This document shows positions 1 through 17,150 of a stretch of DNA of 17,872 nt, one piece after another. Under the pieces are notes generated by a model, which saw nothing but the letters and a program-made list of their open reading frames with translations, made no database searches and was not told where the DNA came from. The stretch spans positions 1 to 17,872 of the forward strand of contig MCFH01000201.1 of the NCBI GenBank assembly GCA_002104945.1, written 5' to 3'. Source of the DNA: Piromyces finnis finn (lineage: Eukaryota; Fungi; Neocallimastigomycota). Position numbers and translations under genes: made by a program. How positions within the stretch are numbered: the first letter of the stretch is position 1; every line of letters starts with the position of its first letter.

Positions 1-6
1 TTTGAA

Positions 7-88
7 GTCACTTTGGCGGAGTGGTTAACGCGGTGGCCTGCTAAGCCATTTCCCTTTGGGAGCGCAGGTTCGAGTCCTGCAGGTGACG
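7..88 (+). tRNA. tRNA-Ser (anticodon GCT), intronless, long variable arm
   Basis: Acceptor stem GTCACTT (7-13)/AGGTGAC (81-87), discriminator G88. D-arm with TGGCGGAGTGG. Anticodon stem GTGGC/GCCAT with loop CT-GCT-AA (GCT at 40-42). Variable arm CCC-TTT-GGG. T-arm GCAGG-TTCGAGT-CCTGC. No encoded CCA. Confidence 0.97.
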
Positions 89-99
89 TTTTAATTTTT
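89..99 (+). terminator. Pol III oligo-dT terminator of the tRNA gene
   Basis: T4 (89-92) and T5 (95-99) immediately follow the tRNA 3' end. Confidence 0.7.
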
Positions 100-465
100 G
101 TTTTATACTTTTTATATATATTATCTTTTTTATTTTATAATTTTTTTAATTGTATTTAATAAAAATTAATCCTAAATCGAATTATTTCATTTTTAATACT
201 AATACAATAAAAATAAGTTTTAAATATATTTGAAAAAATATTTTAATTTTATCTTATTTAATTTAATTATATAATTTTTTATAATAATAAAGATAAAAAG
301 AAAAGATATTATTCAATAATAATAACTTAGTTTATAGTAATAATAATTATTATTTTAAGAATAAGATAATACTTTTTTTATAATTATATTATGTTTTTTA
401 AGAAAAAAAAAACATATAATATATTTCTATAAATTACTCTTTTAAACTATTGCATGTTTTTGTAT

Positions 466-554
466 TAGAATATGATATATGGAATTATGTATAAATAAAT
501 TATGAAATATAGTAATACAATTTATTTATTCATAATTCCATATATCATATTCTA
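466..554. repeat. 89-nt near-perfect inverted repeat (hairpin, MITE-like)
   Basis: TAGAATATGATATATGGAATTATG (466-489) is the exact reverse complement of 531-554. After one T:T mismatch, 491-501 pairs with 519-529, leaving a 17-nt loop. Confidence 0.9.
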
Positions 555-1494
555 TGTCCTCCATACCTTTCAATTTACTTTGTGAATTACATTTAATAGT
601 ATTCTTTGTTTTATATTTTTCATTATTTTCCAATTATTTTTTTCATATAATTTTTTTAATTTTATGGAATTATTTTTATTTATTAAATTAATTATATTAC
701 TTGTAATTATATGTTTGATTTTTTATAATTTTTTGATATAAAAGCATTATTATGTAAATTAATATATCTTTAGTATTTTACATAAACAATGTAACTTACA
801 ATTAAATAACGGTGAAAATGCATTAATAATCATAAAGTCATATTAGTGAATAATTAATTATTGAATAATATTCACTTGCGTAAATAAAATATAGCTTTAA
901 TAGTATTAAAAAAATATTATTATAGTAATTTCATAAATTATAAAAGGTGATTTATATAAATATTTTCATTTTTATGGTAGATAAAAATATTGAAATTAAT
1001 AAAACAACATTCTTCAACACAAAACTTATTATAAAACTCTATCAAATTTAAAATACATATACTTTTTTTAATTTAATCATAATTTATTGTTTATTTTTCA
1101 TATTCTTATTCAATATATGATGATGATGATCATTAATTTTATCAATAGACCAATATATATTATATTAATATTTTGATATAGAAGTATAAGAATGAAATTG
1201 AAAAATCTTCTTAAAAAATAAAATATTTATAAAATATTTGCATATAAATAGTTATTTTGTTTTTAATACTTGTTTGCAATCGGAGATTACTTCTTATTAA
1301 TGTTTATTTATTTAATATATTTATATTAAATTATATATTAATTTTATATTAATTTTTGTTATTAATTTTTTTATTGACTACTTTTTATTTAGAAATAATA
1401 AAAAATATCTTTTTTTTCTTCAATAAAATAAAATATTAAATAATATAAAATAATATAAAATAAATGAAATGTTTTCTTTGATTTAATTTCAAAT

Positions 1495-1659
1495 AGCCAA
1501 TAGGTGAATTTAAATAAATTGAAATGTTGTTTTAATTTATTCTTAAAACTTTGTTTTTATTTTTTTTATTTTATTACTAAACTCTTTTTTATAATGTTTT
1601 GATATATTAAATTTTTGATTTTTATAATTCTTAAGGTTGCATAGGAGAGACTATAAATA
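1495..1659 (+). promoter_or_regulatory. Candidate promoter of the left gene copy (CCAAT box and TATA box)
   Basis: AGCCAATAG (CCAAT at 1497-1501) and TATAAATA (1652-1659) lie in relatively GC-richer islands ~390 and ~230 nt upstream of ATG 1888. Both are conserved in the right arm. TATA-like words are common in this AT-rich background. Confidence 0.35.
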
Positions 1660-1887
1660 CAAAGCCATTGTTCTCTTTTTTTTCTCATTTTATTTTTAAA
1701 ACAATAGCTTTAATTTATTTTTCAATTTCTTTAATTTTGTCCTACTAAATTTAAATTAAAAAAAAAGAAAGAAAACAATATCATTTTTAATTTTACATTG
1801 TTCTCATTGTGTTTTCATTGTCTTCAAAGAACAATATAATTCAATTTTAATAATATTTAAAATTCAAACATTTTATCTTTGACAAAA

Positions 1888-3635
1888 ATGAATGATCTTT
1901 GCTCTTTAGAAAAGTAAGTATTATAAGTATTATCATCCATTATTCATTATCCATCACATTTCAATTATCAATTATCAATTATATTTAATACTTTAGTAGA
2001 TTTATATTGTTTATTTTTTTAATTACATTATTTCTAACATAATTTTATTATTATTATTATTCTATCTATATATATCTATATATAATATAATTTTTATTAT
2101 TTTTATTATTTTTATCATTATTATTTTTATTCTATCTATATATTCTTTATATTAATGAATAATAATCGAAATTCAAAATTTTTAGTCCACTTAATGCATA
2201 TCTTTTAAAGCAAGAAGAATTTAAAAGATACATTAACGATATCCATCAATCTTTAAATTAAAAGAATATCTTAATCAAGGTTACAATCTTGATGATTATG
2301 TAAAATCAAAATGGAATATTTCAAAGTAAGTAAAAATAAAAAATATAAAATATAAAATGGTATAAAGTATATATAAATTATTAAATATTTTAAATAATTA
2401 ATAATATTATATTTTATTATATTTTATTATATTTTATTTATTATATTATAATTTATAGAACTCAAGCCTATCGTTATTTACTTTGTGCAAAACTTATTGA
2501 TCAACTTGAAGAATTTAAAATTCAACCAAGTATGTATATTATATGTATATTAAATAAACATTATTTTATTATTAAATATATATATAAATATAAATATATA
2601 TAAATATAAATATTTAAATAAAATGAATAAATACTAATATGAAATTTCAAAATAATTCAAGATTATGAACGTTTATGCAGATCTTTAAATAAATATGCTA
2701 AAACTACTCAACAAATAAAACTTTTATGGGGAATGATTCTTAAGAGGGTGAATAACAATGTCGATTTGATTACAAGTACTTTGGTTTCTAGAATTTGGAA
2801 TGAACTTTGTAAAGACAAGAAATATTCTCATATATGTCATTATGAAGAATCAATCATGAATAAAATTGAAATGACCATTAAAGAACATTCAAAAAAGTCA
2901 AAACAAAGCCAATTAAAACCAATAAATATTAAAAGAAAAAATTCAAATTCATATGATCATCATAATCAAAATGAAATTCAAAATGAAAACAATAATTGCA
3001 ATAACTGCAATAACTACAATAACTGCAATAACTACAATAACTGCAATAAATACAATAATAATGAAACTAGAACTACTTATTTAACTAGAACTACTTATTT
3101 AACTAGAACTACTTATTTAATATCACCAAAAGATTCATCTTATATTCCTGAAATTTCATCTCAATTAGTAATCATTCCATCGAATGATAATATTTGTAAA
3201 AATATTAATGAAAATATTAAAATTAATCAATATAAAATTGATGATCAATATGAAAATAATGATCAATTTTTATTAATTAACAGTAGCAGCAACAATAATA
3301 ACATTTTTTCTTTATCTCCAATAATTTCCGAACCTTCACTTTCTCCATCATCTTCCTATTCATCTTTATCACCATTGACCCCAAATGATGAAATAATCAT
3401 AACACCAACAATTCCAAGTAATGAAACTATGTTCACTCCAATAGTTTCAAGTAATGATGATGTCTTTACTCCAACAATTCCAAGTAATGAAACTTCAATG
3501 AATACCTTTTCTTCCTATTCAAGTAATGAAATTAATTTATTATCCATTGAATCTAACCAATATTACAATGAAAATCAAAACATTCCAATTTATTATACAA
3601 CTCCAAACAACCAACAAACAATTTTGTATTATTAA
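1888..3635 (+). CDS. 4-exon gene, copy A (~403 aa if repaired): N-terminal HTH-like helical domain plus N/S/T/P-rich low-complexity tail. 1-nt deletion in exon 2 as sequenced.
   Basis: Exons 1888-1913, 2186-2325, 2459-2529, 2662-3635. Donors GTAAGT/GTAAGT/GTATGT, acceptors TTTAG/TATAG/TCAAG, branch-like TACTAAT at 2632-2638. Splice phases 2, 2, 1 all join in frame once the missing C (between 2259 and 2260; present in copy B) is restored: MNDLCSLENPLNAYLLKQEEFKRYINDIHQSLNSKEYLNQGYNLDDYVKSKWNISKTQAYRYLLCAKLIDQLEEFKIQPNYERLCRSLNKYAKTTQQIKLLWG, then the 300-aa ORF 2733-3635. As sequenced, the deletion gives an immediate TAA. Confidence 0.82.
2991..3119 (+). repeat. In-frame coding minisatellites: 7 x 9 nt (N-N-C/N-N-Y, 2991-3053) and 3 x 18 nt exact (TRTTYL, 3066-3119)
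   Basis: AATAACTGC/AATAACTAC units, mostly alternating, and ACTAGAACTACTTATTTA x3. Mirrored identically at 7972-8034 and 7906-7959. Confidence 0.93.
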
Positions 3636-4149
3636 AACCTCTTACTTTTTTTTGGAAATTTTTATAATTGAAAATAGAAATTTTATAAAATTACTATATT
3701 AAATTATAGAAATTAAAATGACAAATAAATATAATTTTATTTGATATAATAATGTGCATATATTAATGATTGAATATATTATAAATAACAAACTATTTTT
3801 ATATATAAAAATTAATAAATAATTATAATTAATATTAATAAATGTACTAATTAACTATACTATAAATTATTATATTTATTTTTATAAAAAAATAAAAGAA
3901 ATATAAAATTTAATACAATTCATATTTTTTAAATAGTTAATATAGTAAAATGATTTCTGATTAATAAAATTGTTTAAACGGATAGAGGTAGTTTAAAGAA
4001 TTTATTTTAATAACCATTAAATATTATTAATTCTTATATTTCCTTATATACTATTTTCAGATGATAAAATGTAATATTTTTTTTAATTTTTGAAAAAAAG
4101 AGTTATTAATCACTATTTATAAAATTATATATTTTAATATTTGCTATTA

Positions 4150-4723
4150 TTTATTTTGAATAATTAAATAATACACATTAAACAGTATAGGTAAAATCTT
4201 TTATTACAAAATTTTTATTTATGTTTATTATTTATTTAGTTGGCTTACATTTGGTTTTATTTACTATTTAGTTGATTTTATTATTAAAATATATTATTAT
4301 ATTTTTTTTCCTTAATCTAAATTATATATATTTTTATTAAAGCCTTTTATAAAGTTAGTAATAAAAATACATATAGACAAACTATGAATTATAGAGTAAG
4401 AATAAATTAGAATGGTAATATTCTATAAATTATTAGTAATATAACAAATAATTAATTGTTACAAATCACTAAAAATGAATTAAAATAATTATTAATTTTT
4501 TTGCAGTATTATTGATAAAAATTATAAATGTAATTTTTGATGATTTTTATCTTCAAATTATTGTCTCTTTCATTTTTGATTGATTATAATTTAAAAGGTT
4601 TAAATTTATTGTTTGTTCTCTTCATCTTTTCCCTCATTAATATTTGAGTCACTTTAAAAGCTATTAATTAATATTATCTTTTGAAAAATTCTTTAGAATT
4701 TGTAGAGATATTTAATCTGAGCT
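4150..4723. repeat. Diverged middle arm of the palindrome (partner ~6339-6900)
   Basis: Exact inverted anchors 4317-4341 = rc(6720-6744) (25 nt) and 4359-4382 = rc(6693-6716) (24 nt), on the same symmetry axis. Looser gapped similarity continues on both sides. Outer limits are approximate. Confidence 0.7.
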
Positions 4724-5160
4724 TTTTCTTCTTCAGCTAGGATAGAATTTTTATGGAGCATATCATAGTAGATTTATTGAATTGGATTAATTCAATAATT
4801 GAAATTGTTAAATATTTATTAATTAATATAATAATACTAGGAAATATTTATTATATTAATAATGTAGAAAAAAAAGGTTTATTTTAACTAGACAGATTGT
4901 ATTATTAATTTTTATATATAAAAGAAAAAAAAGTATAATAATTAAACAATTGCTGCATCTGTCTAAGTAAGTAGTTATAAAAATATTTTATTCATAAATC
5001 ATCATAATAAGTTGCATGAAAGATTGCTGTACAAGTCTAATACCAGACATGTTTTTTTGCGTTTTTTTTAAATACTTTTGTATTTTTTTCTTTTCATCAT
5101 AAAGATGAAGATGATGATACTTAAATAATGATTTTGGTTCTTTTTTCTTCTTTTTATATA
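4724..5160. repeat. Left inner arm (437 bp) of the palindrome, ~99% identical to 5903-6338 (inverted)
   Basis: Base-by-base reverse-complement match with only a few differences (e.g. the H/Y codon seen in the ORF track; GATAGAATTTTT vs GATAAAATTTT). Central spacer is 5161-5902. Confidence 0.95.
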
Positions 5161-5902
5161 TTTTTTTAATAATAATAAAAATTGTTTGATAGTATAAAAT
5201 TTTTTTACAAGAATAAAAACAATATGAATCAAAAGAAGTGGTGAATAATAAAAAAAAATTCATTAAATAGCTTAATTTAATAATATGTCTGGACTTTGGG
5301 AAAATTTTTAAATTTTTATTTATACCACTGATAGGTTCAGTTATAAAATTATATTTATAAATGTTTTTAAGAGGATTTTATATCTACTTTCAATGATCTT
5401 TTATTATTATAATTATTTACTATTTTATGAACTATTAAGTTCCATGTTTAAATGAGCTATTTTCTACTATTTCTACTATTTTAAAAATAACATTTCTCCT
5501 ATTATAATATTAGGTAAAAAATTCTATATGTACTATAATAAAATATTAAAAAGTTTCCTACATTTTCAATACATTATATAAAATTTTATTACATTACGTA
5601 TACATTATTTGTTTAGTTCTTGTGAACGTTTTTTATTATTATTTTTAATCACAAAAAATATAAAATTTAGTATTATTAAATTTGAAATTAAAAATTAAAA
5701 TTTTAATGGTTAAGTTAAAAAATTCATCTATTTCTTGTAATATAAATGATATATTATTTTATTCAACAATAATAATATTAATATAAAAATGATAAAGATA
5801 GTTTTAAATATTTTGTAATTTATAATAATTTTATGTCGATTGTGTGGATAAGTAAATATTCTCCTTTTAATAAATCAAAGACTAAAATAAAACGAAACAA
5901 AG

Positions 5903-6338
5903 TATATAAAAGAAGAAAAAAAGAACCAAAATCATTATTTAAGTATCATCATCTTTATCTTTATGATGAAAAGAAAAAAATACAAAAGTATTTAAAAAAA
6001 ACGCAAAAAAACATGTCTGGTATTAGACTTGTACAGCAATCTTTCATGCAACTTATTATGATGATTTATGAATAAAATATTTTTATAACTACTTACTTAG
6101 ACAGATGCAGCAATTGTTTAATTATTATACTTTTTTTTCTTTTATATATAAAAATTAATAATACAATCTGTCTAGTTAAAATAAACCTTTTTTTTCTACA
6201 TTATTAATATAATAAATATTTCCTAGTATTATTATATTAATTAATAAATATTTAACAATTTCAATTATTGAATTAATCCAATTCAATAAATCTACTATGA
6301 TATGCTCCATAAAATTTTATCCTAGCTGAAGAAGAAAA
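5903..6338. repeat. Right inner arm (436 bp) of the palindrome
   Basis: Reverse complement of 4724-5160. It explains why ORFs 4988-5263(-) and 5833-6075(+) share a C-terminus. Confidence 0.95.
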
Positions 6339-7389
6339 TATTGAACTAGATTGGTTTAATATCTATTTAATATCTACTACATTTTTCAATAATATTCAAA
6401 ATAGTTTCAAAGTATCTTAAAAATAAAAGATAAAGAAAAGAAGAGGAAAAATAAAAGTAATAATTAATAATCAATTAAATTGAAAACTTAGTATGAAGAT
6501 TAAAACTTTCTAAGAAGATTATTAAATATTTATTAATTTCAATAATAATACTAAAAAAAAAGTTAAATAACTTTAAAGGCATACATATTTTTATTTATTA
6601 TTATTTAATTATTTATTATTTTCTAAATATTAATGAAAATAAAAAGAAATTTACAATGCAGTTCCAATATATTTTTACTCCGTAATTCAAATGTTTGTCT
6701 ATATGTATTTTTATTATAGTTTAATAAAAATATATATAATTTAGTTTAAAAAAAATAATACAATGTATTTGAATAATAAGTAATAAAATAAAATTAAATA
6801 AAAATGTCGTAAATTATATATAAAAAAAAATATATAAATAACGAAAATTAATATTCATTTTAATTTGTTTGTATATATTATTTAATGTGTAAATAATTAT
6901 TTGTTATATTTAAATAATATACTATAAGAAAATTTTATGAAAGTACAATTTATCAAATGTAAAATTAAGTTCTAATATATGAAAAATATTTAAAGATATT
7001 AATATATAAAAAAACTATTAACAAAATGGAAATTATAAGTTATCTTTTAAATATTATTTTATTGTTATGTTATATTATTATATAATTATTTTTTATTTAA
7101 TTTTATATCACTATTTTTAAAAATGAATATATTTATTATTAAAATTGTTATATATAGGTATTATGAAAATACTTTTTATCTATTATTAATATTTATTATA
7201 CATATAAAGTGTGCTATTTATAAATTATTTATAAACAATATATACAATTTTATATATACATTAAATTTGAATAGTAGAAAAAATAATAAAATGAAATATC
7301 ATTATTTATTTTTCTATAATTAGATAAGAATTAAAGCTCTATATTTTAGTCGTTTTCCATTACATTAGAATAATTAAATACATAAAATT

Positions 7390-9143
7390 TTAATAATACA
7401 AAATTGTTTGTTGGTTGTTTGGAGTTGTATAATAAATTGGAATGTTTTGATTTTCATTGTAATATTGGTTAGATTCAATGGATAATAAATTAATTTCATT
7501 ACTTGAATAGGAAGAAAAGGTATTCATTGAAGTTTCATTACTTGGAATTGTTGGAGTAAAGACATCATCATTACTTGAAACTATTGGAGTGAACATAGTT
7601 TCATTACTTGGAATTGTTGGTGTTATGATTATTTCATCATTTGGGGTCAATGGTGATAAAGATGAATAGGAAGATGATGGAGAAAGTGAAGGTTCGGAAA
7701 TTATTGGAGATAAAGAAAAAATGTTATTATTGTTGCTGCTACTGTTAATTAATAAAAATTGATCATTATTTTCATATTGATCATCAATTTTATATTGATT
7801 AATTTTAATATTTTCATTAATATTTTTACAAATATTATCATTCGATGGAATGATTACTAATTGAGATGAAATTTCAGGAATATAAGATGAATCTTTTGGT
7901 GATATTAAATAAGTAGTTCTAGTTAAATAAGTAGTTCTAGTTAAATAAGTAGTTCTAGTTTCATTATTATTGTATTTATTGCAGTTATTGTAGTTATTGC
8001 AGTTATTGTAGTTATTGCAGTTATTGCAATTATTGTTTTCATTTTGAATTTCATTTTGATTATGATGATCATATGAATTTGAATTTTTTCTTTTAATATT
8101 TATTGGTTTTAATTGGCTTTGTTTTGACTTTTTTGAATGTTCTTTAATGGTCATTTCAATTTTATTCATGATTGATTCTTCATAATGACATATATGAGAA
8201 TATTTCTTGTCTTTACAAAGTTCATTCCAAATTCTAGAAACCAAAGTACTTGTAATCAAATCGACATTGTTATTCACCCTCTTAAGAATCATTCCCCATA
8301 AAAGTTTTATTTGTTGAGTAGTTTTAGCATATTTATTTAAAGATCTGCATAAACGTTCATAATCTTGAATTATTTTGAAATTTCATATTAGTATTTATTC
8401 ATTTTATTTAAATATTTATATTTATATATATTTATATTTATATATATATTTAATAATAAAATAATGTTTATTTAATATACATATAATATACATACTTGGT
8501 TGAATTTTAAATTTTCAAGTTGATCAATAAGTTTTGCACAAAGTAAATAACGATAGGCTTGAGTTCTATAAATTATAATATAATAAATAAAATATAATAA
8601 AATATAATAAAATATAATATTATTAATTATTTAAAATATTTAATAATTTATATATACTTTATACCATTTTATATTTTATATTTTTTATTTTTACTTACTT
8701 TGAAATATTCCATTTTGATTTTACATAATCATCAAGATTGTAACCTTGATTAAGATATTCTTTTGAATTTAAAGATTGATGGATATCGTTAATGTATCTT
8801 TTAAATTCTTCTTGCTTTAAAAGATATGCATTAAGTGGACTAAAAATTTTGAATTTCGATTATTATTCATTAATATAAAGAATATATAGATAGAATAAAA
8901 TGATAAAATAATAATGATAAAAATAATAAAAATAATAAAAATTATATTATATATAGATATATATAGATAGAATAAAATAATAATAAAATTATGTTAGAAA
9001 TAATGTAATTAAAAAAATAAACAATATAAATCTACTAAAGTATTAAATATAATTGATAATTGATAATTGAAATGTGATGGATAATGAATAATGGATGATA
9101 ATACTTATAATACTTACTTTTCTAAAGAGCAAAGATCACTCAT
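7390..9143 (-). CDS. 4-exon gene, copy B (~403 aa if repaired). 1-nt deletion in exon 3 as sequenced.
   Basis: Exons 9143-9118 (MSDLCSLE), 8839-8699 (141 nt, in frame), 8565-8496 (70 nt vs 71 in copy A; the G of GAA-GAA is missing between 8514 and 8513) and 8363-7390. Same splice signals as copy A. Confidence 0.82.
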
Positions 9144-9368
9144 TTTTGTCAAAGATAAAATGTTTGAATTTTAAATATTATTAAAATTGAATTGTATTGT
9201 TCTTTGAAGACAATGTAAAATTAAAAATGTTATGAATGTATTTTGTATTGTTTACTTTCTTTTTTTTTTTAATTTAAATTTAGTAGGACAAAATTAAAGA
9301 AATTGAAAAATAAATTAAAGCTATTGTTTTAAAAATAAAATGAGAAAAAAAAGAGAACAATGGCTTTG

Positions 9369-9533
9369 TATTTATAGTCTCTCCTATGCAACCTTAAGAA
9401 TTATAAAAATCAAAAATTTAATATATCAAAACGTTATAAAAAAGAGTTTAATAATAAAATAAAAAAAATAAAAACAAAGTTTTAAGAATAAATTAAAACA
9501 ACATTTCAATTTATTTAAATTCACCTATTGGCT
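9369..9533 (-). promoter_or_regulatory. Candidate promoter of the right gene copy
   Basis: Mirror of the left promoter: CCAAT at 9531-9527 and TATAAATA at 9376-9369. Confidence 0.35.
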
Positions 9534-10320
9534 ATTTGAAATTAAATCAAAGAAAACATTTCATTTATTTTATATTATTTTATATTATTTAATATTTTAT
9601 TTTATTGAAGAAAAAAAAGATATTTTTTATTATTTTTTAATAAAAAGCAGTCAATAAAAAATTAATAACAAAATTTAATATAAAATTAATATATAATTTA
9701 ATATAAATATATTAAATAAAAAAACATTAATATGAAATAATCTCCGATTGCAAACAAATATTAAAAATAAAATAACTATTTATATGCAAATATTTTGTAA
9801 ATATTTTATTTTTTAAGATTTTTCAATTTCATTCTTATATTTCTATATCAAAATATTCATACAATATATATTGATATGTAAAATTTGTACAATGTTATTG
9901 ATCATTAACTAATTAGTTTATTAACTAACTAATTTATAATCTTCAAGAAAAATAATTAAATATAAAAATTTAATATTAATAATTTTATGAATTTATATAC
10001 TTTTGTAAATAAAAAAGGATAATTAAGTTGAAAGTGCTGATGAATATAATGATAACATAGGTTAGATTATATTCAATATTTTAGTTTATATCACTTTCTA
10101 ATAAAAATTCACCAAAATTTATGATGCGTTGACCGATATATTTGTGAATAATATAATGTTTTTAATAAATAATAAATTCTATATTATTATGATGAAACAA
10201 TAAATTTAAAATAAAATAAAATATGTTTTATAATTAACAAATAAATCACTCAAAACTCGAAAATAAACTCTTATTATGTTTTAAATTAAATCTTTATTAT
10301 ATTTTATAATTTATTTATTA

Positions 10321-10378
10321 TCTATTTATTGTCTTTTTATTCTCTTATTTATTGTCTTTTTATTCTCTATTTATTGTC
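10321..10378. repeat. Tandem repeat, ~2.6 x 22-23 nt
   Basis: Unit TCT(T)ATTTATTGTCTTTTTATTC starts at 10321, 10343 and 10366 (partial). Confidence 0.8.
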
Positions 10379-11027
10379 CCCTTTTTATAAAGAAGAATTT
10401 TATCTTCCTTTTATACATTTTCATTTACTATTAAATATTATTATTACTATTGTTATTGTTATTATTTATTAAAATTAAAAGAATAAATTAAAATTATGTC
10501 TTAGTATTATAAAATATTATAGAATATTATTTATTTGATTTTCTTATTACTTCAAAATGTTTAAATTTAGAAAAATTATTATAAATTATCATTGACTATC
10601 ATTAAATGTATAATACCTCGAATAAAATAATTAAAATTTAAAATTAAATAATATTAAAATAAAATTAAAATAAAATTAAAATTTAAAATTAAAATAATAT
10701 TAAAATAAAATTAAAATGAAATTAAAATATTAAAAGTATCAATTATTATAAACACTCATTTTATACAGAAACATAAAAGAGTTCTGTATTTTATCTTTGG
10801 AATTGTTATTATTGTTCTATTTCCAGGTTTTAAGTTTATCATTTTAGTAATAATTGCTCAATTAGCTATTTATTAATTTATAAGTTTAAGAGAATTTCTA
10901 AAGAACACTTGGATAAACACTAGAATTAATAATTTGATGTATACCATTTTATTTTTTAGTTAATTTATTCATTTTTATTTATTTATTATTATTTTATTAT
11001 TTTAGTACATTATTGGATTAAGTCGTT

Positions 11028-11105: not shown

Positions 11106-11929
11106 ATTATCACTATTAGGTCGTTTTTACTCAGAATTTATTATATAATAAAGATAATATTATTTATTTAAAGAAAGGGTTATATTTTCATAAAATTATT
11201 ATTCATTCATCTTTAAGGGTTATTATTGTTTATTTTTATTATAAGTTACTATGGGTTAAGTCGTGTTGTCAAAATCACAATTCATGAAATTTGACATTTC
11301 ATGAAATTTCATAATTTTGAATTATTAGTTAAATTAATTAAAATATTAATTTAATAATATTTTACTAATAATAGTTTATTTAATATAAATATTAATTGGA
11401 AAGCTATTTATTATCCGGAGATAAATAGTGTAACAATTAATTAATATTAAACAAACCAATTAGTAAAATAAGATTCATTTAAATAATTATTAATATTATT
11501 TTTAACAACTTATTAATATCGATATTTAAAGAAAATTATATTATTATTATTATTATATTTTATTAATATTTATATTTATATTATTATACATGTATAACTT
11601 AAATTATATTATTATTATACTTTATTAATATCAACATTATATTAAAAATGAAGTATAAATAAGTTGAACAAAGAACAACTTTAAGAAGTTCTTTGTGAGA
11701 TTATTATACTCATTTTTATATAGTAAATTCAATATTTAAAATTAATAATTATCATTTACTTATATTATAAAAATTAAATAAAATATTTCTTAAAAAAACT
11801 ATATTTATTACTCTTTTATTTATAAAAATTTATTATTTACTATATAATTAAGCCTATCCTAACCTAGTAGACTTAATTATAGTTCTAAATCCACTCTAAC
11901 TCTTGACAATAATCTCACCCTACCTTAGG

Positions 11930-12412
11930 ATGGCAGAACAAAACTTTGCTAGCTCTTGGCAAACTATGGATGAAGTTAATCAACTCCGCGAAGATGCTAA
12001 AACTACTGCTGTAGACATTATGAACAGCGTTCAAGAAAACTTTGCTACTATTAGTCAAGTTAAAGATTTTGAAAAACATATTGAATCTCAGTTCCAAGAA
12101 ATTAAAAGAAATACTGCTAATTTCGCACAAGTTTTGGAATCGGTCTCTAACAATATCAACACCATTCAAGAGTATTTAAATAAGAATGGAAAACCAAGTG
12201 GTGGTCAGCCAGACCTAACCCCTTCAGTTGCCCCTTCTACATCTACAAAATATGATTTGGATTTTGATGTAATAATGAGATCAAAATATTTCACTCCAAT
12301 AAATCAAGTTCCAGACCCAGGTCTTTTTTCTGGTGATCCTCATGAAACAGAACTATTCTGTCAAATTTGTGAAGATACTTTTAGCACTTATCCTAATTGT
12401 AACGAATCATAG
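11930..12412 (+). pseudogene. gag: Truncated Ty3/gypsy gag N-terminal fragment from a second retroelement family
   Basis: ATG at 11930 (the track's TTG start is unlikely in a eukaryote). A coiled-coil-like N-terminus is followed by PDPGLFSGDPHETELFCQICEDTFSTYP, resembling the P-x-x-F-x-G-D...F...CE..F...P start of the sushi/Ty3-type capsid domain (compare FAGDRKYLKGFLAKIELVFLLYP in the downstream element). The ORF stops there and no pol follows. Confidence 0.6.
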
Positions 12413-12417
12413 AAATT

Positions 12418-12488
12418 AGTAACCTGTCTTAGTGGTTAGTAACTAAGACCTTGGTTTGAACTACTCGAGTTCGAAACCTCATTAATAT
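12418..12488 (+). other. Possible tRNA-derived relic (Gln-TTG-like) or structured RNA at the gag truncation point
   Basis: A-box-like TGTCTTAGTGGTTA (12425-12438) and B-box GTTCGAAAC (12469-12477) at tRNA spacing, with TTG at the anticodon position (12451-12453). Cloverleaf stems pair poorly. Confidence 0.3.
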
Positions 12489-12713
12489 CTTTTTTTTAAT
12501 TATTAAAATATTTTATAACGAAATTTTACCAAAGAAGATAATTTCTGATTGGCTTAAAAAATTAAGTTGTAAAATTTTTATAAATTTACTTTTAAAAACA
12601 TTTATATAAATACGAGTGAAATTTCTCAAAAAATTATTTTGAATTCGAGTTTTTATTAACAAAGAAATTTTATAATAAAAATAAAATTATTAAACACTAA
12701 CCTGTTATAATTT

Positions 12714-13268
12714 TGTTAAGTGTTCAATAATAAAATTTTTATTTGCTTTTATTATTTTCCTTTTTATATATTTGTGTTTTTATTTATTGAACATTAGTTC
12801 TTTACAATAAAAACTCCTAAAATATATAATAACACCTTAGTGTTTAAAAAAGGAAGAATTTTTAATTTATTAAAAAATTAAGTAAGTCAGTGAAGCTTAT
12901 TTTAACAATAAGGGTACTGAAAACAAAAGTAAAACCCACAGTTATTATAAGGGGAGCGCCAGGACGCTTAATTTAATAATAAAGAAAAAATTCATTTTCT
13001 AATAAAACGTTTTCTACTTTTAATAAATAAAATTAAATTTTATTTATTATTTTTGAAAAAATATTAAAATAACAAAGAAGTTAGGATTCAATACCTCCCT
13101 TAGCGTGGATAGTTGGACACCTATACGTAATACTTTGTTGTTTAGATATTATTAATAATCGGGGAATTAAACCTATTTTTTTTCTTTCCGCTTAATTAAG
13201 TAAGTGACAATAAAGAAACTAATACCGTTAATTCCTTTTATTGAAAATTTTCATTTCCAATATTAACA
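12714..13268 (+). repeat. Candidate 5' LTR (555 bp)
   Basis: TG...CA ends with a 6-bp terminal inverted repeat (TGTTAA at 12714 / TTAACA at 13263-13268), AATAAA at 13209-13214, and a PBS-like segment directly after. The 3' LTR is outside the window, so the 5' boundary is unconfirmed (TGTTAT at 12703 is an alternative start). Confidence 0.55.
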
Positions 13269-13282
13269 ATTGATAATATCTA
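13269..13282 (+). promoter_or_regulatory. Candidate self-priming primer-binding site
   Basis: ATTGATAATATCTA directly follows the LTR-terminal CA and is complementary to TAGATATTATTAAT (13143-13156): 13 Watson-Crick pairs plus 1 G:U. There is no TGG-type tRNA PBS at this position. Confidence 0.55.
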
Positions 13283-13508
13283 CGTTATCAACAAAGAGCT
13301 ACAAGGGACCTAGTATTGAATACTAATAAAATTAAATATTTGATGGTCCAATACTATTTAATTTGACTCTTTGTCTATATTTAAAATATTTTAATCAATA
13401 AATAATAATAAAGATTTAATTTTTTTTTTCTTTCTTAATTTCTTCAAACATAACTTTATCTTATTTACATAATTTTTATTTTCAAACAATTATATTTTTT
13501 TAATTTTA

Positions 13509-16500
13509 ATGGAAGGACAAATATTTGATAACGCCTCACTAAAAGACGGTTTCGCAGGAGACAGAAAATATCTCAAAGGTTTCTTAGCTAAAATAGAACT
13601 TGTTTTTCTCCTTTATCCCGAAAGATATCAAGATGAAGAGAGCAAGGTTATCTACCTGATTTCTCGCCTTTATGGAAATGCATTAAATTGGGCCGCTACG
13701 CTTATTGACAACCATGATCCATGTCTGACCAACTACCAAGCATTCAAGGAAAGACTAAAGGCATTCTACGGGAACAATGATGCAGTCTACGTAGCCAATC
13801 AAATGCTACGTACTCTCAAGCAACATCGTTTGGGCGGCATCAGAGGATACATCCTTGAATTTAACAAATACTCTGATGAATCTAACTGGAATGAAGAGGC
13901 TAAGATGGATGCTTTTATCGCTGGGCTCAACCAAGAAGTTGCAATGAAGATATTAGAGATGTTCCCAGGACCAAGAGATTTGTTTTCCCTCCAAACTATT
14001 GCAGCTAGAATAGACTCCAGACTTGCTACCAGGGGATTATTTTTTGACAAAAATACTAAGGGACCAAGTTCTAATTCCAGCAATGGCTCCAGAAAGGCTT
14101 CCACAAATCTAAAAGAACATCCCAAGAAGAAAAGATACTTTGGTCCGTTATCCAAGGAAGAAAAAGAAAGAAGAAGTAAGGAAAACTTATGTGTCTATTG
14201 TGGATCTCCAGGACACCAACTGAAAGATTGTCATAAGAGAAGAAATAAAAACTCAGCATTCGAATCTTTAGTTTCTCTACAAAATAATTCTACCAATTCC
14301 AAGAAAAATCAACAAGATAGGGTAACCTCAAATTTTAAATTATCGTTTGAACTAGACACAAAAATTCTTATAGACTCCGGTTCTACACTTAATCTAATAG
14401 ATGTCGACTATTGCAACGATCACAATATTCCCTACCACTATGAAGAAGATTTACCCAACGTATTCGGTATTGGTGGTAGCCAAAAACTGTTCGGAGTTAC
14501 TCCACTTCTTAATCTTCGCTACATGGATCACCTATGCCGTACTGTCTTTTACGTTACTGATCTACCTGTATATCCTTGTATTCTAGGTCTACGTTGGCTT
14601 AAGGAACATAATCCAAGTATTGACTTTGAAAATAATAAATTATCCTTTGGTTCTTCATATTGCTTGGATCATTGTATGACTCTCCCTTCGAATGTTCCCG
14701 AATTCCATCAGGAAACTTCTGTTTTTTCTACTGATTGCAATAACTCTTCTTCCGTTTCTTTGCCTATTTTTATTGACAAACCTAAATCTTCTTTTTCAAA
14801 TTCTAAGTTATCTCATTCTCGTAATCCCAAAGAAAATCGTTCTAAATCTGTCTTAATTAACAATGAATCTGTTAACGATCCTTTATCACAAGAGACTTGT
14901 ACTGTCATGGCTTCTAATATATCTCTTTCTAAAGTTGATTCTTGTTCACCAAAAAACTCTTTTAAAGACTCAAATCCTACTACTAAACTTCCGAAGGAAT
15001 TAGAATCATATATGGACGTCTTTAGCGAATCTTCTGCTGCTCAATTACCACCTCATCGTCCTTATGATTGCCAAATAAACCTAATCGAAAATGCCAAGCT
15101 ATTTTATGGACCAATCTACCCACTAACAGACGAAGAAACAAGAGTTTTGAAGGATTATATCGATGAAAACCTCAAAAAGGGTTTCATTAGGAAATCCAAA
15201 TCTCCTGCTGGTGCGCCTGTACTTTTCGTTCCTAAAAAGAATGGTGAACTCCGTCTTTGTCAAGATTATAGGGAACTCAACAAAATTACCATTAGAGATT
15301 CCTATCCTCTACCTCTGATTCAAGATATGCTAGAGCATCTTGGTAAAGCGAAAATCTTCTCAAAATTGGATTTACGATCAGCATATAATTTGGTCCGAAT
15401 CAAAAAGGGTGATGAATATAAAACAGCTTTCACCTGCAAATTCGGCCACTTTGAATACCTGGTAATGCCATTCGGACTGAAAAACGCCCCGGCTGTTTTT
15501 CAGCATTTTATCAATGATGTTCTGGAAAATATTCTAGGGATTTTTGTTTATTCATATATTGACGATTTAATTATTTTTTCTGAAAACCATAAATCCCACA
15601 TTAAGCACGTTATCGAAGTCCTGGATCGCTTAAGAAATGCTGGTCTTTATGCTAAGCTTGAAAAGTGTGAATTCTTTGTTTCCTCTATTGATTTCCTTGG
15701 TCATCGGATATCCTCTGAAGGTATACATATGGACCCCAATAAAGTTTCTGCTATTATTAATTGGCCAGTTCCGTCCAGTGTCAAGGAAGTTCAATCTTTT
15801 ATTGGCCTAGCCAACTACTATCGTCGGTTTATTCCTAATTTTGCCAAAGTTGCACAACCCCTTCACAGACTACTTCGTAAAAACGTTAAATTTGATTTTT
15901 CCTCTGAAGCTCTTGATGCATTTAATACCATTAAATCATTAATTTCATCTGCTCCCATCCTGTCTCACCCAAATCGTGATCTTCCCTTTATTGTTGAAAC
16001 CGACTCTAGCAACTTTGCTATAGGAGCAGTTCTGTCTCAAAAATCTCCTGATGATAAAATGATCCATCCTGTCGCTTTCTATTCAAGATCTCTTACTTCC
16101 GCTGAAAGAAACTATCCTATATACGATAAAGAACTTTTAGCTATTGTTAATGCTCTTGAAACTTGGCGACATTTTCTCAAAGGTGCTTTAACCCCGTTTA
16201 CTATTTATTCAGATCATCGAAACTTACTATATCAAAAGAAACCGGAAAAAATGTCACAACGTCTTGTTCGTTGGGCCCTTTTCCTTTCCGAATTTAACTT
16301 TAAAATTCTCTACCGCTCTGGTTCATCTAATGGTAAACCTGATGCGCTTTCACGAAGACCTGATTATATGGATTCCTCTCTTCCTTCTGATGCTCCTTTT
16401 TCGGTTTTACGCCCTGAGAATTTCTGCGCTTTGATTTGTTCCATTTCTTCTCTTAATGATGAAATATTATCTGAATATGTGAACGACTCTTTTTACATTG

Positions 16501-17150
16501 ACATTTGCAATTTTCTTGAAAATAAGAATCTCCCAGCTCCACATCCACAAAGTAATAAATTCTCCCTTAGTAATAGTTTTCTTCTTTTTGATAGTAGAAT
16601 CTATGTCCCTTTAAAATGCCGTCCCTCCGTTTTGAAACTCTGTCATGATTCCCCCTCTGCCGGTCATTTTGGTATCCGCAAAACTATTTCTTTGATCTCT
16701 CGTGACTTTTGGTGGCCATCCATTTCTATTGATGTTAAGAATTATATCCGATCTTGCGAGATTTGTTGCCGCTCCAAGCCTTCTCGTCATAAACCATATG
16801 GTTTACTTCAACCCCTTGAGATTAGTGACCATCCTTGGGCTTCTATTTCTATGGATTTCATTACTGACCTCCCTCCTTCGGATGGATTTAACACTATTCT
16901 TGTTGTAGTTGACCGCCTTACTAAAATGTGCCACCTCATTCCCTTTAAAGGTATTCCTTCTGCTTCTGATACTGCTTTTGCTTTTTTGAATTATATTTTC
17001 AAAATTCACGGTCTCCCCTCTGAAATTATTTCCGATAGAGGCGCGCAATTCACTTCGAAATTTTGGAAATCTATTTGTCAATCTTTGGACGTCAATGTTA
17101 AATATTCTTCACCATATCATCATCATCCAATGGCCAAACGGAGAGGGTAA
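13509..17150 (+). CDS. gag-pol: Gag-Pol polyprotein (capsid, CCHC knuckle, aspartic protease, RT, RNase H, integrase) in a single frame
   Basis: Capsid motif SKVIYLISRLYGNALNWA; CVYCGSPGHQLKDC (14190-14231); protease LIDSGST (D at 14373); RT LRLCQDYRELN and YIDD (15555-15566); RNase H ETDSSNFAIGAVL...DALSR; integrase HDSPSAGH...CEIC, SMDFIT, IISDRGAQF. The stop at 17148-17150 results from a local frameshift. Confidence 0.97.
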   Translation: MEGQIFDNASLKDGFAGDRKYLKGFLAKIELVFLLYPERYQDEESKVIYLISRLYGNALNWAATLIDNHDPCLTNYQAFKERLKAFYGNNDAVYVANQMLRTLKQHRLGGIRGYILEFNKYSDESNWNEEAKMDAFIAGLNQEVAMKILEMFPGPRDLFSLQTIAARIDSRLATRGLFFDKNTKGPSSNSSNGSRKASTNLKEHPKKKRYFGPLSKEEKERRSKENLCVYCGSPGHQLKDCHKRRNKNSAFESLVSLQNNSTNSKKNQQDRVTSNFKLSFELDTKILIDSGSTLNLIDVDYCNDHNIPYHYEEDLPNVFGIGGSQKLFGVTPLLNLRYMDHLCRTVFYVTDLPVYPCILGLRWLKEHNPSIDFENNKLSFGSSYCLDHCMTLPSNVPEFHQETSVFSTDCNNSSSVSLPIFIDKPKSSFSNSKLSHSRNPKENRSKSVLINNESVNDPLSQETCTVMASNISLSKVDSCSPKNSFKDSNPTTKLPKELESYMDVFSESSAAQLPPHRPYDCQINLIENAKLFYGPIYPLTDEETRVLKDYIDENLKKGFIRKSKSPAGAPVLFVPKKNGELRLCQDYRELNKITIRDSYPLPLIQDMLEHLGKAKIFSKLDLRSAYNLVRIKKGDEYKTAFTCKFGHFEYLVMPFGLKNAPAVFQHFINDVLENILGIFVYSYIDDLIIFSENHKSHIKHVIEVLDRLRNAGLYAKLEKCEFFVSSIDFLGHRISSEGIHMDPNKVSAIINWPVPSSVKEVQSFIGLANYYRRFIPNFAKVAQPLHRLLRKNVKFDFSSEALDAFNTIKSLISSAPILSHPNRDLPFIVETDSSNFAIGAVLSQKSPDDKMIHPVAFYSRSLTSAERNYPIYDKELLAIVNALETWRHFLKGALTPFTIYSDHRNLLYQKKPEKMSQRLVRWALFLSEFNFKILYRSGSSNGKPDALSRRPDYMDSSLPSDAPFSVLRPENFCALICSISSLNDEILSEYVNDSFYIDICNFLENKNLPAPHPQSNKFSLSNSFLLFDSRIYVPLKCRPSVLKLCHDSPSAGHFGIRKTISLISRDFWWPSISIDVKNYIRSCEICCRSKPSRHKPYGLLQPLEISDHPWASISMDFITDLPPSDGFNTILVVVDRLTKMCHLIPFKGIPSASDTAFAFLNYIFKIHGLPSEIISDRGAQFTSKFWKSICQSLDVNVKYSSPYHHHPMAKRRG

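Follow-up and report, generated by a model that had tools for sequence, protein, structure and literature searches.

The contig MCFH01000201.1 of Piromyces finnis (C115), whose entire 17,872-bp length forms the window analysed here, carries a gene-bearing palindrome that is probably the tail-to-tail junction between two copies, A4 and A5, of a five-copy gene array, with a patchwork of arm identities that we attribute to gene conversion between the gene copies and between the arms of a second palindromic repeat, unit U, at its centre. The contig belongs to an assembly of 56.46 Mb in 232 contigs, and its first 11 kb have a G+C content of ~15%. Two inverted arms around a non-duplicated spacer are present both in C115 and in the contigs C190 and C208 of the main assembly taken together, and the arms have different flanks and exhibit real differences. 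A preliminary description of this DNA had presented a lone palindrome; the structure is instead one junction of an alternating array, in which C190 and C208 together contain five copies of the arm unit in the strand order - + - + -. These copies are A1 (C190:287806-290511, - strand), A2 (C190:294022-296882, +), A3 (C190:300423-302936, -), A4 (C190:318181-320913, +) and A5 (C208:981-3773, -). Each unit of 2.5-2.7 kb consists of ~0.7-1 kb of upstream DNA and a three-exon gene. A4/A5, the palindrome, and A2/A3 are arranged tail-to-tail and A1/A2 and A3/A4 head-to-head.

The inverted repeats lie where they had been placed and score far above chance. The left outer arm (1151-3637, + strand; A5, C208:3519-1041) comprises 737 bp of upstream region and the whole gene, and its counterpart is the right outer arm (7388-9873, - strand; A4, C190:320913-318433), in which the gene runs from 9137 to 7390 and homology to A5 continues to 10125 in the main assembly. 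Aligned to each other, the outer arms differ by substitutions in 46 of 2478 columns and by eight indel events, but ~25 of these apparent substitutions come from a pair of ~20-bp indels at 1767-1815 that offset each other and were counted as mismatches in the alignment. A small inversion at 1767-1815 was ruled out as the source of this dense mismatch patch. Inference was drawn from substitutions only, indel differences in this assembly being unreliable. The outer zone (1151-2185), described previously as moderately diverged, is ~97.7% identical outside the indel patch, and its divergence ends at 1892, the position of the last arm-to-arm difference. The adjoining patch, said to be identical from 2186 apart from two indels, does extend to 3637 and holds no substitution at all, but it begins at 1893, and both indels are private to C115. 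This zero-substitution tract (1893-3637, + strand), the putative gene-conversion tract, reaches from codon 2 to 2 nt past the stop and contains no indel in the main assembly.

The two private indels are 1-bp deletions at 2259 in the left arm and at 8513 in the right arm (equivalent to 2511); C208 and C190 lack them at this locus, and they are probably consensus errors of C115. The 'complementary frameshifts' that the twin genes appear to carry in C115 are due to these deletions, as the frames in C208 and C190 are intact. Leftover contigs of this kind duplicate real loci, and their private 1-bp indels can pass for biology.

Further inward, the arms lose their similarity before regaining it. The left outer middle segment (3638-4212) begins with ~300 bp of 3' flank that A5 shares, in diverged form, with A1 and A2 (alignment scores of 145-225, compared with a control maximum of 105-128), and the right outer middle segment (6885-7387) is the 3' flank of A4, which from 2 nt past the stop has no relation to the flank of A1, A2 and A5. 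Permissive BLAST scoring (+1/-1) produced meaningless alignments of 57% identity over this AT-rich window and was replaced by stricter scoring with real-sequence controls. The whole middle (3638-4745 against 6318-7387) gave a global score of 334, whereas dinucleotide shuffles gave 71 +/- 16 and real AT-rich controls, taken from the P. finnis genome itself, at most 256. Splitting the alignment revealed that the signal is concentrated in 4213-4745, in line with the earlier account of a heavily diverged but homologous inner part. The outermost part had been called unalignable, and indeed 3638-4212 against 6885-7387 (575/503 bp) scored ~2.5 SD over the real controls, with a nearly equal score in the wrong orientation. 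The region from 4213 to 6884 constitutes the palindromic unit U, with arms of ~1 kb (4213-5167 and 5896-6884) and a spacer (5168-5895) that measures 728 bp rather than the 742 bp first given. Its inner arm segments (4746-5167 and 5896-6317) are 99.0% identical over 421 columns, as had been estimated, and represent the homogenised part of U. The axis that the outer and inner arms were thought to share proved to be two axes, at 5512.5 and 5531.5, that lie 19 bp apart.

The case for conversion between the gene copies comes from the contrast between the gene and its surroundings. A4 and A5 differ at 14 of 602 upstream sites (12/~530 and 2/73 outside the indel patch) and at none of 1746 sites in the gene (0/1689 and 0/57; Fisher P ~1e-7 or lower). 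In the upstream region (1230-1892), A1, A2 and A5 cluster closely (3-5 differences per ~527 sites), and A4 differs from them at 11-14 sites and A3 at 19-22; A5 itself shows 4-5 differences per 527 sites to A1 and A2 and 12 per 529 to A4. Within the gene (1893-3580) the relationship is a different one: A4 and A5 are identical without any indel, while A2 differs from them by 15 substitutions and A1 by 29. Beyond the gene, A5 again carries the flank that it has in common with A1 and A2. A5 thus combines a core identical to A4 with A1/A2-like sequence on either side, a pattern that reads as the classical footprint of a conversion tract. The inner end of the tract coincides with the end of A4 homology, as expected if A4 was the partner. 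The local re-homogenisation by gene conversion proposed in the preliminary description is therefore upheld by the A4/A5 mosaic, by the A1/A2-like flanks of A5, by the 99% identity of the inner U arms and by a replicate in metagenomic DNA described below.

A3 nearly shares the tract: across 1688 nt of the gene, just 2 substitutions and 2 indels separate it from A4 and A5, and it diverges from 3581 onwards, still within the coding region. Homogenisation therefore involves at least three copies and is family-wide.

The gene could in principle have stayed identical after an inverted duplication without any conversion, through purifying selection or a low local mutation rate, and the near-exact coincidence of the identical tract with the gene, from codon 2 to the stop, speaks for such an explanation. 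Selection on the protein cannot explain the identity, however, because the two introns (272 and 133 nt) are free of differences too, as is a mutable tandem repeat of 18 bp. Moreover, the gene body does not evolve more slowly than the upstream region in the other copies (29/1670 compared with 4/529 between A1 and A5), the tree of the copies changes along the arm, and in the metagenome contig described next the gene body is the faster part of the unit (8-10% divergence as opposed to 4-6%) and yet shows no difference over 1200 sites between the arms. We consider an explanation without conversion extremely unlikely.

That contig, L041 (JGI Ga0302102_10002204), is a 31-kb metagenome sequence from a related fungus whose genes are ~84% identical to the arm gene in conserved parts. 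On this contig the family forms a tandem array of 3.15-kb period that includes one tail-to-tail junction, with arms at 8626-10821 and 12081-14293. The upstream parts of these two arms differ by 4.1%, similar to the 3.7-5.8% of other copy pairs, whereas the gene body with 150 bp past the stop shows 0/1200 differences, compared with 8-10% in all other pairs. The interior of this second palindrome was unalignable. L041 thus repeats the P. finnis pattern in another assembly and another organism, with a tract that is strictly arm-specific.

A second level of homogenisation is seen in U. Comparison of U with six palindromic units at C101:140-180 kb gave 71-72% identity overall and ~82% in the inner arms; diverged fragments extend on C101 up to 203 kb, and no dispersal to other loci was observed. 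The palindromic architecture of U thus predates the split of the two loci, and a test for concerted evolution is therefore possible. The outer halves of the two U arms are 82.5% identical to each other, a value within the range of their identity to the C101 arms (79-85%), whereas the inner 420 bp are 99% identical to each other and 86-89% identical to the C101 units. The inner arms were therefore homogenised after the loci had separated, most strongly near the spacer. Three of the C101 units similarly display higher arm identity beside their spacers, but the closeness of the C101 arms is uninformative overall as a test of conversion, all twelve being 94-100% alike.

The C101 units have a spacer of ~0.5 kb, compared with 728 bp in C115, where ~90 bp at the left edge are homologous to the C101 units. 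A stretch of the C115 spacer (~5299-5649) that is absent from the C101 units matches short stretches on >15 contigs at 70-85% identity and looks like a dispersed short repeat inserted there. U itself looks non-coding: all six frames of U and of its inner arms are about equally conserved relative to C101, with no frame standing out as coding, and an Rfam search of U found no family at the gathering threshold or at E <= 1. A relatively GC-rich 55-nt core (5006-5060, mirrored at 6003-6057) is 91% conserved even in the diverged copies at C101:186-203 kb; it has no Rfam match and no clear frame, and could be a small RNA or a protein-binding site.

The form of U, with ~1-kb inverted arms, a spacer of constant length (about 0.5 kb), seven copies and no coding signal, would also suit a foldback-type transposon lying between the gene copies, and the whole structure might likewise be regarded as an element with long terminal inverted repeats. 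U is restricted to two loci, though, with six copies lying within 40 kb on C101 inside larger segmental duplications, which is not the dispersal that defines foldback transposons; synteny with Piromyces sp. E2, furthermore, extends to the gene arms, in which no transposase-like domain is encoded. A mobile element is accordingly very unlikely to account for the structure.

How the palindrome was founded is a separate question from how its arms became alike. The preliminary description derived it from one old inverted duplication, which is not demonstrable: the outermost middle segments are not demonstrably homologous, the A4 3' flank is unrelated and the centre belongs to a separate repeat family. 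In its strict form, this explanation holds that a single ancient fold-back inverted duplication produced a ~9-kb palindrome about one axis, the remainder of which has since diverged, partly beyond recognition. The two axes do lie so close together that, by our own arithmetic, their coincidence has a chance of ~0.035 if U were placed at random in a 3750-bp interior; on-axis homology is significant from 4213 to 6884, and a pre-existing palindromic unit is a plausible nucleus for a fold-back, which at U could have copied the neighbouring gene. On the other hand, the comparison of 3638-4212 with 6885-7387 is indistinguishable from the wrong-orientation and real AT-rich controls, and the on-axis homology belongs to U, which is itself palindromic at six other places. 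The A4 flank is unrelated after the stop while A1, A2 and A5 keep ~300 bp in common, so that the A4/A5 split would have to predate all the splits among those copies, yet A4 and A5 are the most similar pair. Nor do the other three array junctions have mirrored interiors. We regard the strict form as doubtful.

The interiors of A1/A2, A2/A3 and A3/A4 have no on-axis inverted homology; they are not palindromic and are unrelated to the A4/A5 interior. Origin-dependent inverted-repeat amplification (ODIRA) or a related fold-back amplification was considered as the source of the array and rejected: the copies do alternate in orientation, but three interiors are unmirrored and the arm-adjacent segments of A4/A5 are not demonstrably mirrored.

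In Piromyces sp. E2, one contig has three members of the family, all on the same strand, and after them a RanBP1-like and a PDS5-like gene. The same two genes also adjoin A1 in P. finnis, which establishes synteny at this locus; the ancestral arrangement was probably a direct tandem array.

In reverse complement, positions 4685-17872 of C115 correspond to the final 13.2 kb of C190 (C190:310435-323601) and positions 1230-4677 to the initial 3.4 kb of C208 (C208:1-3448), and positions 1-1956 match C190:291664-289707. Over ~18 kb, these matches contain no substitution and 44 small indels, mostly of 1 bp in homopolymers and concentrated at the contig ends. The end of C190 and the start of C208 meet without gap or overlap at C115 4677|4678, as though a single contig had been split at this point. 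C115 is therefore redundant, a second assembly of the C190|C208 junction, and it stems from the same data as C190. Its left flank (1-1150) equals C190:291664-290512 except for 1-bp indels and is the upstream flank of A1, not that of A5; this A1-type flank switches to the A5 arm within 1230-1366, inside the repeat. For the left 1.2 kb of C115, a chimeric overlap through the repeat is the probable origin, and a real rearrangement is less likely. The left edge of the palindrome at 1151 is consequently specific to C115; in the main assembly the arms (C190:318181-320913 and C208:3773-1041) are 2.74 kb long and 97.5% identical, they reach position 10125 of C115 on the right, and the palindrome spans ~9.2 kb in total. 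At 8898, C115 contains a 7-bp unit that A4 lacks in C190 and that A3 and A2 possess; this is not a homopolymer error and may reflect mixed-copy reads in the C115 consensus or a real variant.

Several of these features are what one would expect if the identical patches or the central join had been created by mis-mapped long reads, by a chimeric fold-back molecule or by repeat collapse. C115, a leftover contig of 17.9 kb, is composed of segments that recur without substitutions at three other places; at its left end the changeover from A1 flank to A5 arm falls within a repeat, its private indels include the 7-bp unit that resembles A3/A2, and C190 and C208 are cut exactly inside the structure. 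A fold-back chimera, however, cannot generate real upstream substitutions and indels, unrelated 3' flanks or different outer flanks. The fold-back read artefact already argued against in the preliminary description is rejected here too, since spacerless arms, identical over their whole length and in their flanks, would be expected, in contrast to the 728-bp spacer, the diverged middle, the unrelated 3' flanks and the 14 upstream substitutions observed. C190 alone runs from A4 through the spacer to the opposite inner arm, the U palindrome recurs six times inside the 857-kb contig C101, and L041, an independent metagenome assembly, displays the same pattern. The identical tract of 1.75 kb is, furthermore, shorter than typical long reads, which should anchor in the unique flanks. 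An origin in assembly or polishing therefore appears improbable.

We accordingly favour the reading of the palindrome as an A4/A5 junction whose identities were reshaped by conversion, and several points weigh against it. C190 and C208 break inside the structure at 4677|4678, where only C115, a contig with a mosaic left end, is continuous, and consensus cross-talk between near-identical copies retains a small probability. Homogenisation is not cleanly arm-specific in P. finnis, as A4 and A5 show no differences and yet the third copy, A3, is only 2 substitutions and 2 indels away, in contrast to the arm-specific metagenome tract; since A3 nearly shares the tract, either A3 or A4 could, to judge from the alignment, have converted A5. 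A single recent conversion event fits the data as well as an ongoing process does. The E2 assembly is based on short reads and may have collapsed inverted copies. Finally, the break-repair or template-switch route outlined below is one that we infer, while the alignments themselves point clearly to mosaic haplotypes, arm-specific identity and polarity towards the centre.

In the mechanism that we propose, non-reciprocal, non-crossover homologous recombination, that is, gene conversion, would take place between inverted paralogues at two levels. At the first level it would act on the gene copies, leaving a tract, no shorter than 1.75 kb and coincident with the gene (1893-3637), in which A4 equals A5 and A3 nearly does. 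At the second level it would act on the two arms of U, of which only the 420 bp beside the spacer would have been homogenised. The tracts would abut the interior and extend 0.4-1.75 kb outward. Breaks in or near the AT-rich, hairpin-prone interior may be repaired from the partner arm without crossover, or replication may switch templates there; the inner tract boundary would be set where homology ends at the interior.

The gene carried by the arms has three exons. The left copy (1888-3635, + strand) consists of exon 0 (1888-1913), exon 1 (2186-2325) and exon 2 (2459-3635, with the stop at 3633-3635), separated by introns at 1914-2185 (272 nt) and 2326-2458 (133 nt), and contains in C115 the private deletion at 2259. 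The 300-aa open reading frame (ORF) evident in the window corresponds to the last exon only. Homologues carry ~105 extra N-terminal residues, which map to the arms as exon 1 and then, after the second intron (GTAAGT...TATAG), exon 2, and in relatives a conserved splice acceptor immediately precedes exon 1. The first exon encodes MNDLCSLE, matching MADISFLE of the paralogue P0001. The ATG at 2155 was rejected as the start, being out of frame in all copies and lying where relatives have the conserved acceptor. The exons were compared singly, and the database paralogue P0001 was used for fold prediction.

In a homologue search, the family was confined to Neocallimastigomycota and gut metagenomes, and the closest relatives of the arm-encoded protein were P. 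finnis proteins. Pfam searches with the 300-aa ORF and four homologues returned nothing above the gathering cut-off. The database name 'F-box protein' of one homologue (P0010) was not adopted, as the F-box-like match reached 14.7 bits (E = 0.026) compared with a cut-off of 24.3 and the F-box match had E = 0.15. An AlphaFold2 model of P0001 from a 14-sequence alignment (mean pLDDT 48.7) has a helical N-terminal region of ~160 aa and a disordered tail; the tail of the protein is rich in Asn and Ser. Foldseek comparison of this model with the PDB gave no match at E <= 0.001, the best being the helical lid of RuvB (E = 0.22). The 18-bp tandem repeat lies in exon 2 (2946-3120 and its mirror) and has an equal copy number in A3, A4 and A5, one unit fewer in A1 and two fewer in A2. 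A3 contains a 1-bp deletion near the equivalent of 3032 that breaks the frame, be it real or an error. In the region 1-5149 of a further metagenome contig, L043 (ENA k141_289088), a family member has as neighbours, at a distance of a few kb, a large gene for a polyketide synthase and a CotH/CBM10 gene.

The remaining features of the window and of the array concern transfer RNA genes and retrotransposons. A tRNA-Ser(GCT) gene lies at 7-88, in the left flank of C115, and copies at C190:291577-291658 and C190:304078-304159 are located ~1.1 kb upstream of A1 and of A3. The outermost 250 bp of A3 (C190:302690-302936) are repeated in inverted orientation ~0.8 kb away (303738-303987), beside the tRNA-Ser gene, forming a small local palindrome. 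The 15.3 kb between A3 and A4 consist mostly of a recent nested long terminal repeat (LTR) element insertion with 100% identical 644-bp repeats. In the right third of C115, nested LTR retrotransposons occupy 11265-11908, 12398-12806 and 13509-17150. The 644-bp repeat (11265-11908) has a partner of 100% identity at a distance of 12.2 kb on C190, and the block that it bounds encloses a Ty3/gypsy element with 413-bp LTRs (99.8% identical) and an intact 1213-aa gag-pol ORF (13509-17150). Both elements look like very recent insertions into the interval between A3 and A4. The nested block measures 12.8 kb, and its 644-bp terminal repeat begins ~70 bp from the tRNA gene upstream of A3, as expected for Ty3-like targeting of genes transcribed by RNA polymerase III.

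A literature search revealed no paper linking palindromes with Neocallimastigomycota. What is described here is a further case of a known process, gene conversion, in a lineage from which no such palindrome has been described in the literature searched. The locus offers a clean and checkable example, in which the tract equals the gene, both flanks derive from another subfamily and the pattern is replicated in a related fungus. Tentatively, anaerobic gut fungi might routinely expand gene families as inverted arrays, tail-to-tail or head-to-head, with conversion towards the centre keeping the coding regions letter-identical while promoters and 3' flanks drift; on present evidence we would not expect this to be general, but if true it would constitute a lineage-wide mode of gene-family evolution, possibly driven by AT-rich, hairpin-prone DNA, of which A4/A5, the C101 units and L041 would be instances. 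Such a mode, if general in gut fungi, would have a bearing on the expansion of their large enzyme families and on the way in which these remain uniform.

Mammalian sex chromosomes, yeasts and organelle genomes provide well-known cases of gene conversion between inverted paralogues. The human Y palindromes P1-P8 and the X palindromes have gene-bearing arms of tens of kb to Mb, and arm-to-arm gene conversion in the human Y palindromes was reportedly described by Rozen et al. in 2003. In primate sex-chromosome palindromes, non-crossover conversion between arms has been inferred from concerted evolution (review PMC3308322). The P. finnis palindrome resembles these in its gene-bearing inverted arms, its unique spacer and an arm identity far above that predicted from age. 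It differs in that its arms measure 2.7 kb rather than tens of kb to Mb, its identity is patchy, a third copy of the five-copy array nearly shares the perfect tract, its centre is a repeat family of its own, and the locus has no sex-chromosome or testis-gene context.

Among fungi, long inverted repeats containing ORFs have been described in Candida albicans, for example a 3.2-kb pair with 99.5% identity lying 11.3 kb apart (Todd et al. 2019, PMC6591007). That paper reports inversions, copy number variation and loss of heterozygosity at inverted repeats of this diploid ascomycete and does not use the term gene conversion. Both systems are fungal and gene-bearing, with arms of a few kb that are >= 99% identical, lie several kb apart and are substrates of intrachromosomal recombination; the P. 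finnis evidence, in contrast, is evolutionary, consisting of mosaic haplotypes, and comes from an anaerobic fungus of an early-diverging lineage with ~15% GC. In yeast, ODIRA generates interstitial inverted triplications of alternating orientation (PMC4689423). Alternating copies are common to the P. finnis array and to ODIRA, fold-back or breakage-fusion-bridge products, and a pre-existing inverted repeat such as U at the turn-around fits such processes; ODIRA, however, predicts mirrored interiors at every junction, whereas in P. finnis only A4/A5 has on-axis homology. The closest counterpart is the concerted evolution of multigene families by interlocus gene conversion, with which the locus shares identical tracts, sharp boundaries and incongruent trees; there is no essential difference between the two, and this is the general class to which the locus belongs.

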